Origin: Macrostomum lignano
Lineage: Eukaryota
Length of the DNA stretch: 64,000 bases
Direction of reading: 5' to 3'
Assembly (NCBI GenBank): GCA_002269645.1
Contig: NIVC01003223.1
Location: forward strand, 21,555-85,554
Shown: piece after piece, positions 6,005 through 61,544 of the stretch
Position numbering within the stretch: position 1 is the stretch's first letter
Layout of the letters: the number at the start of each line of letters is the position of its first letter
Made by a program: the position numbers and the translations under genes
Notes under the pieces: model-generated
Databases searched by the model: none
Told to the model about the DNA's origin: nothing
What the model saw: the letters and a program-made list of their open reading frames with translations, nothing else

Positions 6005-6725
6005 AGTCAGTTACAAAGTGGGTCAGGTAGTCAATAAGTGAGTCAGCAAGTGAGCCAAGAAGTGAGTAAATTAGTGGGTCAGGTTATCAGTGAATAAGTG
6101 GGTCAAGTAGTCAATAAGTGGGCCAGGTAGTGAGTCAATAAATGGGCCAGGCAGTAAGTCAATAAGTAGGTCAGGTAGTGAGTCAATAAGTGGGCCAGGT
6201 AGTGAGTCAATAAGTGGGTCAGGTAGTGAATCAATAAGTGGGTCAGGTAGTGAGTCAATAAGTGGGTCAGGTAGTGAGTCAATAAGTGGGCCAGGTAGTG
6301 AATCAATAAGTGGGTCAGGTAGTGAGTCAATAAGTGGGTCAGGTAGTGAGTCAATAAGTGGGCCAGGTAGTGAGTCAATAAGTGGGCCAGGTAGTGAGTC
6401 AATAAGTGGGTCAGGTAGTGAGTCAATAAGTGGGTCAAGTAGTGAGTCAATAAGTGGGCCAGGTAGTGAGTCAATAAGTTGGTCAGGTAGTGAGTCAATA
6501 AGTGGGTCAGGTAGTGAGTCAATAAGTGGGTCAGGTAGTGAGTCAATAAGTGGGTCAGGTAGTGAGTCAATAAGTGGGTCAGGTAGTGAGTCAATAAGTA
6601 GGTCAGGTAGTGAGTCAATAAGTGGGCCAGGTAGTGAGTCAATAAGTAGGCCAGGTAGTGAGTCAATAAGTAGGTCAGGTAGTGTCAGAAGGTGGGTCAA
6701 TGTTAGGTTAGTAAGTAGGTCAGAC
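6005..6725. repeat. 24-bp minisatellite (GTAGTGAGTCAATAAGTGGGTCAG), SLBP 3' flank
   Basis: Tandem copies read directly. Confidence 0.92.
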
Positions 6726-6774
6726 AATGAATCCGTAACTAAATTTGGTTGTGCTTAATTGGGAAGTCTAAGGA

Positions 6775-6990
6775 GCAGCACATTCAACTCAGTATTTGAG
6801 CATCACCCAGCAGCACACAACTCAGTATTTGAGCATCACTCAGCAGCACACAACTCAGTATTTGAGCATCACTCAGCAGCACAAATACACAACTCAGTAT
6901 TTGAGCATCACTCAGCAGCACACAACTCAGTATTTGAGCAGCACATTCAACTCAGTATTTGAGCAACACATTCAACTCAGTGCTTGAGCT
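6775..6990. repeat. 25/33-bp repeat overlapping the SLBP stop codon
   Basis: AACTCAGTATTTGAGC recurs; the last copy is the stop-codon context. Confidence 0.85.
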
Positions 6991-7654
6991 TCTTGGAGGG
7001 CGAGTCGGTGAGGGCGGAGGACCTCTTGCGGGTGAGTCTGGGACAGGCGGCTCCCACAGCGAGTCCCTGAACATCGCTGGTCAAGCCGCTGTGCAGAGCG
7101 TCGGGCTGGACGCTGGAGGTGGCGGCAGGTACAGCGGTGAGGGTCCGAGAGTCGCCGTCTTCATCGTCAGCCGGAAGCTTCGCAGGCGGTGGCGGCGGCG
7201 TGGACGATGGCGAGGACCGCGGCGAGATGCCAGCGCTGCTGCTGGCTGCGTCATCCCAGCGATGAAGCTGCAGCTTCCACTGCTTGACGCAGCCGTCCCA
7301 GGCTCTGCGGGACATTCGCACGAACTTGTTCGGAGTTCGCGGGTCGCCCTTCTCCCGCAGAGGCTTCGGCACCGACTTCACGTAGTTCGCGTACGCCGTC
7401 AGGTTCTTCGACTTGTCGATGTCGCGCTGCCGACGCAGCAGAACCGCCTCATCGTCCTCCATCTCGAAGCAGCTGCCGTCTGAGGCGTTTGAGTTCAGCG
7501 ATGAGTTCAAGTTGCCTCCCACGCTGCTGTTGAGGCTCTGCGACAGCCGCTTCTGCGCCTGCTTGGCCTCGTAGCGCTGCCTGTCGAGTCGCGTCGTCTC
7601 GAACAGCTCGTCCTGCTTGGCCCAGTCCGTGTACATGGGGATGCGCTCCTTCAC
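6977..7654 (-). CDS. SLBP: SLBP exon 2 (RNA-binding domain)
   Basis: ccccag|GTG AAG; TPNK..SRRAWD..VKQWKLQLHRWD; ends TGA. Confidence 0.92.
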   Translation of the reverse strand: MKERIPMYTDWAKQDELFETTRLDRQRYEAKQAQKRLSQSLNSSVGGNLNSSLNSNASDGSCFEMEDDEAVLLRRQRDIDKSKNLTAYANYVKSVPKPLREKGDPRTPNKFVRMSRRAWDGCVKQWKLQLHRWDDAASSSAGISPRSSPSSTPPPPPAKLPADDEDGDSRTLTAVPAATSSVQPDALHSGLTSDVQGLAVGAACPRLTRKRSSALTDSPSKKLKH

Positions 7655-8399
7655 CTGGGGATGGGGTGCGGCTGCTCAGTACCTGAGATACCTGGGATGG
7701 GGTGCGGCTGCTCAGTACCTGGGATACCTGGGATGGGGTGCGGCTGCTCAGTACCTGGGATACCTGGGATGGGGTGCGGCTGCTGAGTACCTGAGATACC
7801 TGGGATGGGGTGCGGCTGTTCAGTACCTGGGAAACCTGAGATGGGGTGCGGCTGCTCAGTACCTGGGATACATGGGATGGGGTGCGGCTGCTCACTACCT
7901 GGGATACCTGGGATGGGGTGCGGCTGCTCAGTACCTGGGATACCTGGGATGGGGTGCGGCTGCTCATGCTCAGTACCTGGGATACCTGGGATGGGGTGCG
8001 GCTGCTCATGCTCAGTACCTGGGATACCTGGGATGGGGTGCGGCTGCTCAGTACCTGGGATACCTGGGATGGGGTGCGGCTGCTCATGCTCAGTACCTGG
8101 GATACCTGGGATGGGGTGTGGCTGCTCAGTACCTGGGATACCTGGGATGCTCCCAATACCCCAGCAAGCGCACGCACCTGCCGCAGCTCAATGCTTGGAT
8201 CATATCGCAGGTGTCTCGGCACCCCGCCAGCCAGGCTGTTCCGCCCGCCAGCAAAGCCGTGGCGCCGACCGCCCCTGCCAGCCAGTGAGGAGCCGGCGGC
8301 AGCAGAGGCTGGCAGCGATGGCCGCGAGATTCGACTCCGGGACCTGCTGGTGTCCCTGCGGCGCTGCGGCGAGGCTGCCTTCCTGTGACGGGTCTCCAT
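6977..8399 (-). CDS. SLBP: Histone RNA stem-loop binding protein, 2 exons (8142-8399, 6977-7654)
   Basis: RNA-binding domain EDDEAVLLRRQRDIDKSKNLTAYANYVKSVPKPLREKGDPRTPNKFVRMSRRAWDGCVKQWKLQLHRWD matches the SLBP family pattern. Phase-0 GT-AG intron 7655-8141. Confidence 0.9.
7655..8150. repeat. 36/42-bp array forming the whole SLBP intron
   Basis: Sense unit GTATCCCAGGTACTGAGCAGCCGCACCCCATCCCAG. Confidence 0.93.
8142..8399 (-). CDS. SLBP: SLBP exon 1 (basic low-complexity N-terminus)
   Basis: ATG GAG ACC at 8399; GC-rich; donor CAG|GTATCC in phase with exon 2 (a second donor 9 nt downstream is also possible). Confidence 0.7.
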
Positions 8400-12777: not shown

Positions 12778-50310
<37,533 letters not shown>

Positions 50311-53126: not shown

Positions 53127-53648
53127 TCACAGCCTTTTGCTGTCGCTAGCAGCAGCTGGCACTTGCCGTTTCCATTTCCATTGCTGCCTCTTGTTGCCAG
53201 GCTTACAACTGGCCAGAGTGAGTTTATTACCTGGCGAAGCTTCCATACAGAGGCCTCTTAAAGCGTGATAAATGCTGCCATCGGATCGATAGCGCCACTC
53301 CTGATTGCCGCGGCCGCCGTGACAATTGTAGATGATGACATTGTCACCGCCTGGAAAGTCTACGCAGCCTTCGTCCCGCCGAATTTCGCCGTTCTTAGAC
53401 AGCATCCAGAACTGATTGCCGCCCTGGCCGTGACAGGGCCAGAGCTTCACGATGGTCCTGCCGGACTCGTGATGACTCACTGGCGAGTCAATGCAGTACG
53501 GCACCGCGGCGTTCTCGATGGGACCTCGGGCCAGAGCGTGTCTGGGCAGGAACAGTTCGGGGTAGACGGTGTCCAAATACCACTGGAAACTGCGGCAGCC
53601 AAGTCGCTGGCGGAGTGCTTTGCGTTCAGACACGTCGCCGTAATTTCC
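53127..53648 (-). CDS. GALNT: GALNT last exon (ricin-type lectin domain)
   Basis: gccag|GGA; [22 protein letters not shown]; QxW repeats; TGA. Confidence 0.92.
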
Positions 53649-56600
53649 CTGGCGTAAATGGGATTTTGGAGATTCTTTTTAATTTAAACTAATTGCAGTT
53701 AAGACAAACAAGATAAGCCAGGGGTAGATGATAATGATTGGATCTGAGTAGGGATCGATGGGATCAAAGTAGGAATCGATGGGATCAGAGTAGGGATCCA
53801 TGGGATCAGAGTAGGGATCCATGGGATCAGAGTAGGGATCCATGGGATCAGAGTAGGGATCCATGGGATCAGAGTAGGGATCAATGGGATCAGAGTAGGG
53901 ATCAATGGGATCAGAGTAGGGATCAATGGGATCAGAGTAGGGATCCATGGGAACAGAGTATGGATTAATCGGATCAGAGTATGGATTGATAGGATCAGAG
54001 TATGGATCAATCGGATCAGAGTATGGATTGATAGGATCAGAGTATGGATCAATCGGATCAGAGTATGGATTGATAGGATCAGAGATGAGGATTCAAGTAA
54101 AGATGTATTTCGCAAATATAAATCTGTTGAAAATCCTTTTGGCCTTGATAATTTGATGTTAAGCTAAAAATGATAAAATTATTAAAGCCAGACATAAACA
54201 AACGAAACAAACCGGTTTTGACTAGTTAAAGAATTCGAGAAAGCTTAGCAAATAAAATAAAAGATCAAAAAAACACATGATAATACGCCTAACTTGAATC
54301 TCAAGCCGGTTATAATAGAATTTAGCAGCCGAAACAGCGTGCATTAATAGCATTAATGGCTATGACATGTCTCAACGTGCGCAAGTGGCGGTGTTACAAC
54401 AAATAAGCTCTTTCGCGCGCATCTACTAGCTATGGAAATGTTATTATTTATCTGAGACAAATATAGATCCAGGCATTTGCTAAAATTTGCACTGATTTTA
54501 AATCGACAACATTTAGTAAATTGAATGAAAAATTTCTATACTAAACCAGCTACAGAGAGGGCGCCAGCTACAGAGAGGGCGCCAGCTACAGAGAGGAGGC
54601 GCCAGCTACAGAGGGGAGGCGCCAGCTACAGAGGGTAGGCGCCAGTTACAGAGGGGAGGCGCCAGCTACAGAGGGGGCGCCAGCTACAGAGGGGCGCCAG
54701 CTACAGAGGCGGCGCCAGCTACAGAGGGGAGGCGCCAGCTACAGAGGGGGCGCCAGCTACAGAGGGGCGCCAGCTACAGAGGCGGCGCCAGCTACAGAGG
54801 GGAGGCGCCAGCTACAGAGAGGAGGCGCCAACTACAGAGGGGGCGCCAGCTACAGAGGGGGCGCCAGCTACAGAGGGGAGGCGCCAGCTACAGAGAGGAG
54901 GCGCCAGCTACAGAGGGGGCGCCAGCTACAGAGGGGGCGCCAGCTACAGAGGGGGTGCCAGCTACAGAGAGGCGCCAGCTACAGAGGGGGCGCCAGCTAC
55001 AGAGAGGCGCTAGCTACAGAGGGGGCGCCAGCTACAGAGGGAACGCCAGTGAGGGGGCGGCAGCTACAAAGGGGGCGCCAGCTACAGAGAGGCGCCAGCT
55101 ACAGGGGCGCCAGCTACAGAGAGGCGCCAGCTACAGAGGGGGCGCCAGCTACAGAGGGAACGCCAGCTTCAGAGGGGGCGGCAGCTACAGAGGCGGCGCC
55201 AGCTACAGAGGGGAGGCGCCAGCTACAGAGGGGAGGCGCCAGCTACAGAGGGGGCGGCAGCTACAGAGGCGGCGCCAGCTACAGAGGGGAGGCGCCAGCT
55301 ACAGAGGGGAGGCGCCAGCTACAGAGGGAACGCCAGCTTCAGAGGGGGCGGCAGCTACAAAGGGGGCGCCAGCTACAGAGAGGCGCCAGCTACAGAGGGG
55401 GCGCCAGCTACAGAGAGGCGCCAGCTAAAGAGGGGGCGCCAGCTACAGAGGGAACGCCAGCTTCAGAGGGGCGGCAGCTACAAAGGGGGCGCCAGCTACA
55501 GAGGGGCGCCAGCTACAGAGGGCCTTGCTGAATATAAAGACAAAACTGAAGCTGAAATTTGCAGTCAAAGCATTATGCTCAGGCAATGAGATAATTTGCC
55601 TACCTTTCCCCCTACTCTCTCGTAGTAGATAGTCGCGTACTCGTCCATCCACACGTCAGCCAGTCGCACAGAATTCTTTTTCAACACGCTGCCGGTGCCC
55701 CAACTGTAGGGCGAGCGCTTCCGAAAGATGTGACCAACAATGGAGCAGGGCACAATCTCCAGGGTGCCGCCGCACATCCAAATTTTGAAGCTAATCTCTA
55801 AATTCTCTCCGCCCCAGATGTCGAATCCGGGATCGTAGCTGCCCAGATGGGCAAAGTATTTCCTGGAAATGGAGAACAGTCCGCCAGCCATGGTGGGGCT
55901 GCGAACCGGATCGATCCTACTTAGCCGGCGCTTCCTGTCGCGCTCGGGCACAACGTGCCAATTGAATTGTAAATTCCAGTCGAATCCGCCAACACTCATC
56001 GAGTCTAAATTAGTTGCCGTGGACATTGCCAAGGTGCTATCGCTGATCACTTCGATAGTTGGCGTCACAACGTTTGTCCAGTTGAGCGCGATCCGATGCA
56101 GCAGCGGCTCGAGCCAGCCTGTGGGGCATTCGCAATGCGAATCCAGGAATGTCAGCACAGTGCCTTCGGCTTTGCGGGCTCCCATTAACCTGGCGCGGAT
56201 TAGGCCTTCGCGCTTGGCTGCCCGAAGGATTCGAACCTGAGTGATGCAAATTAGGCTACTTTTAGTAGTGTGAGAAGAATTATATTCAACTTTACATTGT
56301 ATAACTTTACAACTACTTAACTTGAAGGTCAGGGGTTCGATTCTTGATCCCACTAGAACAATTTGTGTCCTTGAGCAACACACTGAACTCTGCATTGCTT
56401 CAGTTCACCCAGCTGTAAAATGGATGCCAGCATTAGCTGAGGTAATTAAAGGTGTGCGTGGCGACCCCCCACAGTCCTTGGACTGAACAGCCGCACGCAG
56501 CCTTCAGATCAGGTGACAATCACACGCTAATCTAATCAGTGATCAGGTGACAATCACACTAATCTAATTAGTGATCAGGTGAAAATCACACTAATCTAAT

Positions 56601-59600
56601 TAGTGATCAGGTGACAATCACACTAATCTAATTAGTGATCAGGTGACAATCACACTAATCTAATCAGTGATCAGGTGACAATCACACTTATCTAATCAGT
56701 GATCAGGTGACAATCACACACTAATCTAATCAGTAATCAGGTGACAATCACACACTAATCTAATTAGTGATCAGGTGAAAATCACACTAATCTAATTAGT
56801 GATCAGGTTACAATCACACACTAATCTAATCAGTGATCAGGTGACAATCACACACTAATCTAATCGGTGATCAGGTGACAATAACACACTAATCTAATTA
56901 GTGATCAGGTGACAATCACACTAATCTAATTAGTGATCAGGTGACAATCACACACTAATCTAATCAGTGATCAGGTGACCATCACACACTAATCTAATCG
57001 GTGATCAGGTGACAATCACACACTAATCTAATTAGTGATCAGGTGACAATCACACTAATCTAATTAGTGATCAGGTGACAATCACACACTAATCTAATCA
57101 GTGATCAGGTGACAATAACACACTAATCTAATTAGTGATCAGGTGACAATCACACTAATCTAATTAGTGATCAGGTGACAATCAAACACTAATCTAATCA
57201 GTGATCGGGTGACAATCACACACTAATCTAATCAGTGATAAGATGACAATCACACAATAATCTGATCAATGATATAAAAATAATTTCAATAAGTAAAACC
57301 TTACTTTAGGCGAATAATAACGCATATATTCGGTGAGCGGCCGTTTCAGATGCTCATATTCGGATGCATCGTCAACTAGAATAATTTCTTTAATAAGACT
57401 AGGCGGAGACCGATTGATAACCGAGTGCACAGTGCGCAGGAGCACTGACCAGGCCTCGTTGTGGAAGCAGATAATTACAGATGTGTCCGGCAGAGGACCC
57501 GGGTATCTGCAGTTTTAGGGGAAAGAGCGCCTGTTTTTATAAGGCAATTTTGTAAGCAGTTCGTGTAAATGAAAAAGGGGTGTTTATTAGTGACTATTGC
57601 AGGTAGCTTACGTGTGAATAAAAGGGGTGTTTATTAGTGACTATTGCAGGTAGCTTACGTGTGAATAAAAGGGGTGTTTATTAGTGACTATTGCAGGTAG
57701 CTTATGTGTGAATAAAAGGGGTGTTTATTAGTGACTATTGCAGGTAGTTTACGTGTGAATAAAAGGGGTGTTTATTAGTGACTATTGCAGGTAGCTTATG
57801 TGTGAATAAAAGGGGTGTTTATTAGTGACTATTGCAGGTAGCTTATGTGTGAATAAAAGGGGTGTTTATTAGTGACTATTGCAGGTAGCTTATGTGTGAA
57901 TAAAAGGGGTGTTTATTAGTGACTATTGCAGGTAGCTTACGTGTGAATAAAAGGGGTGTTTATTAGTGACTATTGCAGGTAGCTTACGTGTGAATAAAAG
58001 GGGTGTTTATTAGTGACTATTGCAGGTAGCTTACGTGTGAATAAAAGGGGTGTTTATTAGTGACTTTTGCAGGTAGTTTACGTGTGAATAAAAGGGGTGT
58101 TTATTAGTGACTATTGCAGGTAGCTTACGTGTGAATAAAAGGGGTGTTTATTAGTGACTATTGCAGGTAGCTTACGTGTGAATAAAAGGGGTGTTTATTA
58201 GTGACTTTTGCAGGTAGTTTACGTGTGAATAAAAGGGGTGTTTATTAGTGACTATTGCAGGTAGCTTATGTGTGAATAAAAGGGGTGTTTATTAGTGACT
58301 ATTGCAGGTAGCTTATGTATGAATAAAAGGGGTGTTTATTAGTGACTTTTGCAGGTAGTTTACGTGTGAATAAAAGGGGTGTTTATTAGTGACTATTGCA
58401 GGTAGCTTATGTGTGAATAAAAGGGGTGTTTATTAGTGACTATTGCAGGTAGCTTATGTGTGAATAAAAGGGGTGTTTATTAGTGACTATTGCAGGTAGT
58501 TTACGTGTGAATAAAAGGGGTGTTTATTAGTGACTATTGCAGGTAGCTTATGTGTGAATAAAAGGGGTGTTTATTAGTGACTATTGCAGGTAGCTTACGT
58601 GTGAATAAAAGGGGTGTTTATTAGTGACTATTGCAGGTAGCTTACGTGTGAATAAAAGGGGTGTTTATTAGTGACTATTGCAGGTAGCTTATGTGTGAAT
58701 AAAAGGGGTGTTTATTAGTGACTATTGCAGGTAGTTTACGTGTGAATAAAAGGGGTGTTTATTAGTGACTATTGCAGGTAGCTTATGTGTGAATAAAAGG
58801 GGTGTTTATTAGTGACTATTGCAGGTAGCTTATGTGTGAATAAAAGGGGTGTTTATTAGTGACTATTGCAGGTAGCTTATGTGTGAATAAAAGGGGTGTT
58901 TATTAGTGACTATTGCAGGTAGCTTACGTGTGAATAAAAGGGGTGTTTATTAGTGACTATTGCAGGTAGCTTACGTGTGAATAAAAGGGGTGTTTATTAG
59001 TGACTATTGCAGGTAGCTTACGTGTGAATAAAAGGGGTGTTTATTAGTGACTTTTGCAGGTAGTTTACGTGTGAATAAAAGGGGTGTTTATTAGTGACTA
59101 TTGCAGGTAGCTTACGTGTGAATAAAAGGGGTGTTTATTAGTGACTATTGCAGGTAGCTTACGTGTGAATAAAAGGGGTGTTTATTAGTGACTTTTGCAG
59201 GTAGTTTACGTGTGAATAAAAGGGGTGTTTATTAGTGACTATTGCAGGTAGCTTATGTGTGAATAAAAGGGGTGTTTATTAGTGACTATTGCAGGTAGCT
59301 TATGTGTGAATAAAAGGGGTGTTTATTAGTGACTTTTGCAGGTAGTTTACGTGTGAATAAAAGGGGTGTTTATTAGTGACTATTGCAGGTAGTTTACCTG
59401 TGAATTAAAGGGGTGTTTATTAGTGACTATTGCAGGTAGCTTATGTGTGAATAAAAGGGGTGTTTATTAGTGACTATTGCAGGTAGTTTACGTGTGAATA
59501 AAAGGGGTGTTTATTAGTGACTATTGCAGGTAGCTTATGTGTGAATAAAAGGGGTGTTTATTAGTGACTATTGCAGGTAGCTTACGTGTGAATAAAAGGG

Positions 59601-61544
59601 GTGTTTATTAGTGACTATTGCAGGTAGCTTACGTGTGAATAAAAGGGGTGTTTATTAGTGACTTTTGCAGGTAGTTTACGTGTGAATAAAAGGGGTGTTT
59701 ATTAGTGACTATTGCAGGTAGCTTACGTGTGAATAAAAGGGGTGTTTATTAGTGACTTTTGCAGGTAGTTTACGTGTGAATAAAAGGGGTGTTTATTAGT
59801 GACTATTGCAGGTAGCTTATGTGTGAATAAAAGGGGTGTTTATTAGTGACTATTGCAGGTAGCTTACGTGTGAATAAAAGGGTGTTTATTAGTGACTATT
59901 GCAGGTAGCTTACGTGTGAATAAAAGGGGTGTTTATTAGTGACTTTTGCAGGTAGTTTACGTGTGAATAAAAGGGGTGTTTATTAGTGACTATTGCAGGT
60001 AGCTTACGTGTGAATAAAAGGGGTGTTTATTAGTGACTTTTGCAGGTAGTTTACGTGTGAATAAAAGGGGTGTTTATTAGTGACTATTGCAGGTAGTTTA
60101 CGTGTGAATAAAAGGGGTGTTTATTAGTGACTATTGCAGGTAGCTTATGTGTGAATAAAAGGGGTGTTTATTAGTGACTATTGCAGGTAGCTTATGTGTG
60201 AATAAAAGGGGTGTTTATTAGTGACTTTTGCAGGTAGTTTACGTGTGAATAAAAGGGGTGTTTATTAGTGACTATTGCAGGTAGTTTACCTGTGAATAAA
60301 AGGGGTGTTTATTAGTGACTATTGCAGGTAGCTTACGTGTGAATAAAAGGGTGTTTATTAGTGACTATTGCAGGTAGCTTATGTGTGAATAAAAGGGGTG
60401 TTTATTAGTGACTATTGCAGGTAGTTTACGTGTGAATAAAAGGGGTGTTTATTAGTGACTATTGCAGGTAGCTTATGTGTGAATAAAAGGGGTGTTTATT
60501 AGTGACTATTGCAGGTAGCTTATGTGTGAATAAAAGGGGTGTTTATTAGTGACTATTGCAGGTAGTTATTGTGTGAATAAAAGGGGTGTTTATTAGTGAC
60601 TATTGCAGGTAGCTTATGTGTGAATAAAAGGGGTGTTTATTAGTGACTATTGCAGGTAGCTTATGTGTGAATAAAAGGGGTGTTTATTAGGACTATTGCA
60701 GGTAGCTTATGTGTGAATAAAAGGGTGTTTATTAGGGACTATTGCAGGTAGCTTATGTGTGAATAAAAGGGTGTTTATTAGGACTATTGCAGGTAGCTTA
60801 TGTGTGAATAAAAGGGGTGTTTATTAGTGACTATTGCAGGTAGCTTATGTGTGAATAAAAGGGGTGTTTATTAGTGACTATTGCAGGTAGCTTATGTGTG
60901 AATAAAAGGGGTGTTTATTAGGGACTATTGCAGGTAGCTTATGTGTGAATAAAAGGGGTGTTTATTAGGGACTATTGCAGGTAGCTTATGTGTGAATAAA
61001 AGGGGTGTTTATTAGGGACTATTGCAGGTAGCTTATGTGTGAATAAAAGGGGTGTTTATTAGTGACTATTGCAGGTAGTTTATGCATCAATAATAACAGG
61101 GGTGTTTATTAGGAATCATTGCAGGTAGCTATATAAAAATGATAGCAAACTCCATTCATACTACTTACTTAGCGGCTTTGCACTGAGCGTCGCGATTATC
61201 GCCCAACTCTCTATCCAGCGAGATCATATCGCTGGCGTATTGATTAAATGCGTTTCTCTGCCAGCCTTCGTCGTATTTTCTTCGTTCAGTGGAGGACAGC
61301 TTGTTCTTGTCAATGTTGACAGGGCGGCCGCCTTCGCCGTGCTCGTGTCCCGGGTTGGGATAGGCGGCCCACAGCTCTCGAATATGGGCCGGCGGTGCTC
61401 GGCGAACCCGTCTGGTGACAATGTGCTGGCCGAGTTTGAGTCATCTGGATGGAGCTGCGGCTTCTGCTGCTGTGCTTGTTGATGACGATGAGCCTGGAGC
61501 ATGTCCCGGTGGTGCACCCGGTTGAATATGATCTCGTCGCGTAC
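53127..61544 (-). CDS. GALNT: Polypeptide N-acetylgalactosaminyltransferase (GT27 plus ricin lectin), 5' end not found. Exons 61169-~61544, 57305-57506, 55604-56236, 53127-53648
   Basis: [13 protein letters not shown]; [22 protein letters not shown]; EIILVDDAS; FLDSHCEC (DxH); PTMAGGLF; [10 protein letters not shown]; ricin [10 protein letters not shown]. Junction phases are consistent. Confidence 0.9.
53735..54085. repeat. 21-bp minisatellite (GGGATCAGAGTAGGGATC[C/A]AT) in the last GALNT intron
   Basis: Tandem copies. Confidence 0.9.
54545..55525. repeat. 18-21-bp minisatellite (GGCGCCAGCTACAGAGGG) in the last GALNT intron
   Basis: Tandem copies. Confidence 0.92.
55604..56236 (-). CDS. GALNT: GALNT catalytic exon
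   Basis: ctcag|GTT; [21 protein letters not shown]; AAG|GTAGGC. Confidence 0.93.
56315..56500 (+). mobile_element. 5'-truncated tRNA-derived SINE with CORE-like domain
   Basis: B-box GGTTCGATTC 56334-56343, followed by TGTGTCCTTGAGCAACACACTGAACTCTGCATTGCTTCAGTTCACCCAGCTGTAAAATGG, which resembles the MIR/CORE consensus as recalled (not database-checked). Confidence 0.7.
56505..57265. repeat. 32/34-bp minisatellite (GTGATCAGGTGACAATCACACTAATCTAATTA) in a GALNT intron
   Basis: Tandem copies starting at the SINE 3' end. Confidence 0.92.
57305..57506 (-). CDS. GALNT: GALNT GT1 exon (missing from the ORF track)
   Basis: ctgcag|A TAC; [30 protein letters not shown]; AAA|GTAAGG. Confidence 0.9.
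57565..61135. repeat. 47-bp satellite, about 76 copies, in a GALNT intron
   Basis: GTGTGAATAAAAGGGGTGTTTATTAGTGACTATTGCAGGTAGCTTA[C/T]; period 47 (57601 to 57648). Confidence 0.96.
61169..61544 (-). CDS. GALNT: GALNT stem-region exon (5' boundary/frame uncertain)
   Basis: [29 protein letters not shown]; AA|GTAAGT; an in-frame TGA at 61441-61443 lies upstream of the conserved part. Confidence 0.65.

Follow-up and report, generated by a model that had tools for sequence, protein, structure and literature searches.

The DNA analysed here, hereafter called the window, corresponds by its coordinates to the last 64 kb of contig NIVC01003223.1 from the flatworm Macrostomum lignano, and carries on its minus strand a two-exon gene for the histone stem-loop-binding protein (SLBP) that runs from 8399 to 6977. 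The best protein match of this locus is the M. lignano protein PAA52529.1 (BOX15_Mlig027305g1), and the DNA is identical here to that of NIVC01003223.1 (L001). The coding part of exon 1 (8178..8399, minus strand) has 74 codons, M...IELRQ, and its translation equals PAA52529.1 except for the translated 5' UTR of the latter, the annotated transcript start lying at about 8465. The coding part of exon 2 (6977..7654, minus strand) comprises 225 codons plus the stop, starts with GTGAAGGAGCGCATCCCCATG and encodes the SLBP domain that binds RNA (Pfam PF15247, E = 7.5e-24) as well as the region of the DW motif, in a sequence that is conserved with other flatworms. Between them lies the sole intron of the gene (7655..8177, minus strand), a GT-AG intron of 523 nt in phase 0 that interrupts the protein at the junction IELRQ|VKERIP; the gene span of 1489 nt is the sum of 288, 523 and 678 nt. 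A separate minisatellite of 33 and 25-nt units, detected with Tandem Repeats Finder (TRF) and distinct from the array in the intron, begins at the stop codon and occupies the 3' UTR at 6774..6989 (minus strand); it is followed, within the region 6029-6989, by a further 3' UTR array at 6037-6684 that has about 27 copies of a 24-nt unit.

Repeats accompany other genes in the window as well. On the minus strand, a gene for a polypeptide GalNAc-transferase extends over 53130-61227, with exons at about 61227-61168, 57535-57299, 56395-55604 and 53651-53130. Its intron of 3.6 kb (57536-61167) consists for 98% of a single array with about 76 copies of a 47-nt unit, so that only some 37 to 40 nt next to each splice site are unique, and the remaining two introns of the gene are mostly arrays too. 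Also on the minus strand lie the exons of an LRRK-type gene (27073-27573, 34480-35400 and 39201-39914; Pfam COR-A, LRR and ANK_LRRK2), which are separated by minisatellite arrays, for example that at 27691-28097 between two exon-like ORFs. On the plus strand, an ORF with a polynucleotide kinase 3'-phosphatase domain (1227-1790; PF08645, E = 1.5e-26) is directly followed by a 16-nt array at 1806-2085. Microsatellites are present as well, among them (CTAA)n at 17836-20861 and (ACTA)n at 41400-42242.

Altogether, 39 minisatellite arrays with a period of 8 nt or more account for 41% of the 64-kb window, a proportion that rises to 48% when microsatellites are included; for the M. lignano genome, simple and tandem repeats together have been reported to amount to 15% (PMC5730564). 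Since minisatellites make up 41% of the window, the presence of an array inside an intron is to be expected here. Repeat-filled introns are common in the genome of M. lignano, and the SLBP case is not very unusual in this respect.

According to the initial annotation, the SLBP intron would be array from end to end over 487 nt, with the first repeat unit supplying the donor (CAG|GTATCC) and the last unit the acceptor. The array of 487 nt is real and the acceptor does lie at its end (7655|7654), but the intron is longer: its donor, CAG|GTGCGT at 8178|8177, is situated in non-repeat sequence 36 nt upstream of CAG|GTATCC. The 5' segment so added to the intron (8142..8177, minus strand; GTGCGTGCGCTTGCTGGGGTATTGGGAGCATCCCAG) is mostly not array, for only its final 8 nt (CATCCCAG) match the repeat unit while the rest falls outside the TRF call; with a length of 36 or 37 nt, it is kept in 7/7 genomic copies of the gene. 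We place the donor at 8178|8177 because protein models, a contig from a relative and the gap-free alignment of a flatworm motif all fix the exon junction. The GenBank model PAA52529.1 joins ...YDPSIELRQ to VKERIPMYTDW, and a further 14 SLBP models of M. lignano show this join too; the annotation that the assembly has in GenBank was obtained from RNA-seq and transcriptome assembly rather than ab initio (PMC5730564). The contig, L002 (Logan SRR28338164; 1-1091), which may be cDNA or genomic, belongs to a Macrostomum-like relative with 85% amino-acid identity, is colinear with M. lignano SLBP over the junction and reads GAGCTGCGGCAG|GTGAAGCAGCGC unbroken across it. Its exon 1 part has additional Ala, Ser and Gly-rich codons with respect to M. 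lignano. In turn, the sequence YDPSIELRQ|VKERIPMY aligns gap-free to YDPFIEIRRAKERLERY of other flatworms, and the wider motif YDPxIE[IL]R[RQ][AV]KER[IL] lines up without a gap when M. lignano is compared with further flatworm SLBPs; a 12-aa insert is therefore not expected at this point.

The splice sites themselves are in agreement with this assignment. Compared with the consensus CAG|GTAAGT, the donor at 8178|8177 has 7 of 9 matches, with G at +5 and T at +6, whereas the array donors GTATCC and GTACTG have 6 of 9 matches and neither of these two residues. The intron has the features of a U2-type GT-AG intron, running from the consensus-like donor CAG|GTGCGT to CCCCAG|GTG; it is absent from the transcriptome-based models and its removal restores the conserved frame, as judged from the models, contig L002 and flatworm conservation. 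There is a lesson for annotation here, in that the boundary of an array is not the boundary of an intron.

Within the intron, TRF reports a 36-nt array at 7653-8149 with 13.3 head-to-tail copies and 91% matches, which is the profile of a minisatellite. When cut at AG|GT, the array resolves into 13 units of 36, 42 or 37 nt that sum to 487 nt (7655-8141, minus strand), with the consensus GTATCCCAGGTACTGAGCAGCCGCACCCCATCCCAG as derived from TRF, unit dissection and pattern search. Three of the units carry a 6-nt insertion, the 42-nt units of the window copy being explained by a 6-nt internal duplication. The terminal unit of 37 nt (7655..7691, minus strand), which ends with CATCCCCAG, supplies the acceptor at 7655|7654, so that the array adjoins the acceptor without any spacer; it finishes with CCCCAG instead of CCCAG, a type that recurs in 7/7 copies of the gene. 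Each unit contains two AG|GT sites, a C-rich tract and a branch-point-like TACTGAG, assigned by eye, about 20 nt before its final AG. The window intron has 25 AGGT sites in its 523 nt, each preceded by CCCCATCCC or GTATCCC, and the array therefore presents the configuration of dual-specific sites, namely AGGT after a pyrimidine tract. The 36-nt consensus unit has 10 matches in the window as against 0 in shuffles, all confined to the SLBP intron, and a pattern search did not find it elsewhere in the window or in the flanks of the locus. A dispersed or transposon-borne repeat can be rejected for the sampled sequence, given this confinement of the unit. Searches with Rfam returned no match to a known RNA family anywhere in the window.

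The assembly contains at least nine annotated SLBP copies, which belong to two 5'-UTR families, and the comparisons that follow were made with seven distinct loci retrieved from seven different contigs. On contigs L003 (NIVC01000732.1) and L007 (NIVC01003176.1), paralogues of SLBP and of the GalNAc-transferase occur together, an arrangement that the window shares and that is indicative of duplicated segments. The introns of the seven copies measure 253, 367, 400, 523, 620, 672 and 1072 nt, with arrays of approximately 217 to 1036 nt that span a nearly five-fold range in length and about 6 to 29 units. All seven have the common start of 36 or 37 nt and the common terminal unit ...CACCCCATCCCCAG, and the paralogous copies include units of 24, 35 and 37 nt too. 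The array is a hypervariable minisatellite, because the introns of the seven copies range from 253 to 1072 nt; its copy number varies in the manner of a VNTR, here as seen between gene copies. It resembles known intronic VNTRs in having head-to-tail units of 24 to 42 nt that are non-coding, variable in number among copies and of local origin. It differs from them in abutting the acceptor, in holding duplicated exon sequence and in having units that are each shaped like a splice site. One could suspect that the array, or its length, was produced by long-read misassembly in a repeat-rich polyploid genome, the assembly having been described as difficult and redundant (PMC5730564); yet seven different contigs all have this architecture while differing in the order of their units and in point variants, and we regard such an artefact as very improbable.

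The same copies bear on the alternative that the array is translated, either as an exitron or as a coding repeat of SLBP, the apparent frameshift being then a homopolymer error. The initial annotation had correctly described the array as stop-free in the frame of exon 1, where it translates as VSQVLSSRTPSQ repeats, and as having a length of 487 = 3x162+1 which, with the extra C in the last unit, leaves exon 2 out of frame. The array of L003 is similarly stop-free, and the units except the last are multiples of 3. This evidence requires some qualification: two of the three frames of the 36-nt unit are open, and in a GC-rich unit with a length divisible by 3 there is nothing remarkable in a frame that lacks stops. 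The extra C is not a sequencing error, since it is found in 7/7 copies and also in internal junction-type units; indeed, the terminal CCCCAG unit is identical in all seven independently assembled copies. The intron lengths of the seven copies, modulo 3, are 1,1,1,1,1,2,0 (the 523 nt of the window copy giving 1), and stops interrupt the read-through frame of exon 1 in five of them, only the window copy and L003 being stop-free. Because the lengths are mixed modulo 3 and five copies have in-frame stops, the array is without coding constraint. Moreover, the repeat occurs in 0/16 protein sequences, and its translation would split the motif conserved in flatworms. The exitron or coding repeat is thus refuted by the absence of the repeat from protein models, by lengths that do not preserve the frame and by the stops; we give this reading, combined with the homopolymer error, practically no credence.

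How would an intron so crowded with potential splice sites be processed? The productive splice joins the unique-sequence donor at 8178|8177, which alone among the donors has G at +5, to the AG that closes the array at 7655|7654. In the mechanism that we propose, each unit would amount to one more copy of a module for the 3' splice site, with TACTGAG, C-rich tract and AG, and with a GT also at its start; the many decoy sites would be either passed over, the strongest donor and the final acceptor being preferred, or cleaned up by re-splicing. In particular, splicing to an internal AG|GT would regenerate a donor that could be spliced again, which would account for the tolerance of decoys. Use of an internal acceptor without further processing would cause a frameshift, the remaining length being 1 modulo 3, while an internal donor joined to the last acceptor would add in-frame blocks of 12 or 14 aa, in this copy only. 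The initial annotation had anticipated both of these outcomes; preservation of the frame is lost in other copies, which have 24-, 35- and 37-nt units.

From here it is a short step to regard the units as functional in themselves, with the 25 dual-specific AG|GT sites serving for recursive removal of the intron or as alternative 5' sites that add 12-aa blocks to the N-terminal region of SLBP. Every unit has indeed GT at its start, AG at its end and the branch-point-like TACTGAG about 20 nt before the AG; in the window copy, each internal donor combined with the last acceptor keeps the frame. Dual-specific AGGT sites have also been reported as used and as enriched in tandem-repeat genes (PMC10809524), and the SLBP array shares with those of polyubiquitin UBC and with recursive splice sites the property that each unit boundary is an AG|GT, potentially a 5' or a 3' site. 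However, the units of UBC are coding and its isoforms vary in the number of monomers, whereas the SLBP units are non-coding and their internal sites putative. The frame is not maintained among the other copies, no annotated isoform has an insert, and the internal donors lack the G at +5 and score below the real donor (6 against 7 of 9 consensus matches). A functional role of the units is consequently improbable in our judgement, even if internal donors or acceptors may be used, or the donor at 8142|8141 for a minor in-frame isoform.

The origin of the array can be traced in the paralogous introns. Five of the seven contain internal 24-nt units, GTGAAGGAGCGCA-CCCCAT(C/T)CCAG, each placed after CCCCAG, which correspond to the acceptor followed by the 20 nt that open exon 2, with an identity of 19/20, a score that is reached by 0 of 5000 shuffles. 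The exon must be the source and the array units the copies, because the conserved VKERIPMY is encoded where exon 2 begins. In L004, one unit of 36 nt, one junction unit of 37 nt and one exon copy of 24 nt make up a higher-order block of 97 nt that is repeated several times. These blocks, together with the exon-2 copies inside the introns, point to an array that grows when sequence spanning the 3' splice junction is duplicated in tandem or exchanged unequally; we infer that the array began, and keeps growing, via replication slippage or unequal exchange over this junction. The junction-type units are recognisable by CCCCAG, in agreement with the four Cs of ATCCCCAT in exon 2. Paralogues also contain 27-nt units that are without the sub-repeat GTATCCCAG; together with the 42-nt units of the window copy, these suggest a series of units from 24 to 27, 36 and 42 nt.

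The duplication was probably primed by a short direct repeat, GGAGC(GC)ATCCC, that flanks the acceptor. The initial annotation had located this repeat in both flanking exons. Its two motifs are present, GGGAGCATCCCAG at 8154-8142 and GGAGCGCATCCCC at 7649-7637, the upstream one being in fact intronic since the donor lies at 8178|8177; hence GGAGCATCCC stands in the intron, close to its border, while exon 2 has GGAGCGCATCCCC. In the window copy there are no verbatim exon-2 units, these having been either lost or never present, and the resemblance of its 27-nt core to the start of exon 2 is weak (p about 0.03). The putative derivation of the 36-nt unit itself from the splice junction rests on the paralogues. 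The SLBP array is in any case set apart from other local arrays, as it has no spacer before the acceptor and is made from the splice junction itself.

Duplication at AG|GT, as proposed in the initial annotation, therefore builds the array, given the acceptor and 20 nt of exon 2 found inside five of the seven introns; that it also gave birth to the intron is unproven, the 5' end being unlike exon 2. In a gain of the Rogers type, an intronless ancestor ...CGGCAG GTGAAGGAGCGC... would have undergone tandem duplication of an exon segment with AG|GT, the upstream AG|GT becoming the donor and the downstream one the acceptor, with the array as the amplified remnant. Several observations are in line with such an event. 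Exons 1 and 2 meet at CAG|GTG, which is a proto-splice site, GTG stands at the start of the intron as well as of exon 2, and exon-2-derived units lie within the intron in five of the seven copies, though not in the window copy; furthermore, the high copy number of SLBP would buffer non-functional intermediates. There are precedents for the duplication mechanism in vertebrate ATP2A1 (PMC3265369), potato RdRp (PMC4974935) and Drosophila (PMC2891723), with which the SLBP case shares the creation of splice sites by AG|GT duplication, the presence of duplicated exon sequence within the intron and a position that is not common to distant relatives. The SLBP gene differs from these cases in that its donor lies in sequence unrelated to the exon, in that the duplication spans an existing acceptor and has been iterated many times, and in that the birth of its intron is unproven.

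It is at the ends of the intron that the model meets with difficulty, since it predicts a 5' end that repeats the beginning of exon 2 and a 3' end that repeats the close of exon 1. The 5' end of the intron has only GTG in common with the 5' end of the downstream exon, and beyond this GTG the first 18 nt of the intron show no similarity to exon 2 (p = 0.66); its first 28 nt have no source in the gene region on either strand, the best local alignment scoring below the shuffle mean. Likewise, CAG is all that the intron has in common, at its 3' end, with the end of exon 1 (...GCTGCGGCAG vs ...CCATCCCCAG). The units derived from the exon have kept 95% identity to it, and a donor end of equal age should therefore remain recognisable.

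Distant relatives provide the second line of evidence. The comparison of intron positions was kept within flatworms, as the region is not reliably alignable beyond them. The intron at ELRQ|VK is absent in Clonorchis sinensis, Mesocestoides corti and GCA_045687925.1, all distant flatworms, which have no intron at the homologous site YDPxIEIRR|AKERL; these three share instead a phase-0 intron 19 codons upstream that is missing in M. lignano (L009 about 896-930, L010 about 696-733, L011 about 804-1044), which in Clonorchis is a microintron of 35 nt and in GCA_045687925.1 measures about 240 nt. On the basis of these three genes without an intron here and with one 19 codons upstream, the position of the M. 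lignano intron appears to be lineage-specific. Sliding from the upstream flatworm intron finds no trace in linking sequence, the two sites being 57 nt apart. Orthologues without the intron, to which the initial annotation had looked as a check on recent birth, do exist in these three flatworms, but they are very distant, may form a single clade and have parasitic-flatworm-like sequences, so that loss in their lineage is equally parsimonious; contig L002, for its part, may simply be cDNA. An exhaustive representative search yielded 1652 SLBP relatives, in which close Macrostomum sequences all collapse onto P0002 and the next-best relatives covering the junction look parasitic-flatworm-like. A trimmed SLBP query free of low complexity retrieved three distant matches and no further Macrostomum sequences, and the neighbouring multi-exon GalNAc-transferase, used as a query, found no orthologue from a Macrostomum relative.

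Taking these results together, we consider that the locus probably contains an ordinary spliceosomal GT-AG intron, in one gene of the multi-copy SLBP set, and that the body of this intron owes its size to a minisatellite that arose locally and varies in copy number. Later inflation of a pre-existing intron is accordingly the history that we favour, with reasonable though far from full confidence, over birth by duplication, which seems to us unlikely. The intron may nevertheless be young, because its position is absent from the three other flatworms. A small ancestral intron is compatible with the 36-nt segment that runs from GT to AG, the size of flatworm microintrons (about 36 nt; PMC6530080), but this segment is not evidence for one: the 36-nt units have the same GT-to-AG limits, there is no sign of separate splicing of the 36-nt pieces of SLBP, and the match in size may be a coincidence. 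Somewhat more doubtful even than birth by duplication is a broader scenario of gain in the Macrostomum lineage, in which the whole body of the intron would derive from serial duplication of the acceptor and exon 2 start, its approximately 25 AG|GT sites being processed stepwise or yielding in-frame N-terminal variants. Were this gain to be true, the seven paralogues would be snapshots of the duplication-driven origin and growth of an intron.

Inflation of a pre-existing intron, the history preferred here, is an example of phenomena that are already known, namely intronic repeats with a varying number of copies and splice junctions that become duplicated. Clear cases of intron origin and growth are scarce, and the SLBP locus gives a direct view of duplication across a splice junction, with seven copies that represent different stages. 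If close relatives were found to be without the intron, M. lignano SLBP would become a well-documented case of duplication-driven gain in an animal. If they have it, as is more likely, then a minisatellite has multiplied a 3' splice site dozens of times while leaving an essential gene intact, and the SLBP copies of M. lignano would offer a natural substrate for the choice of the spliceosome among identical acceptors.
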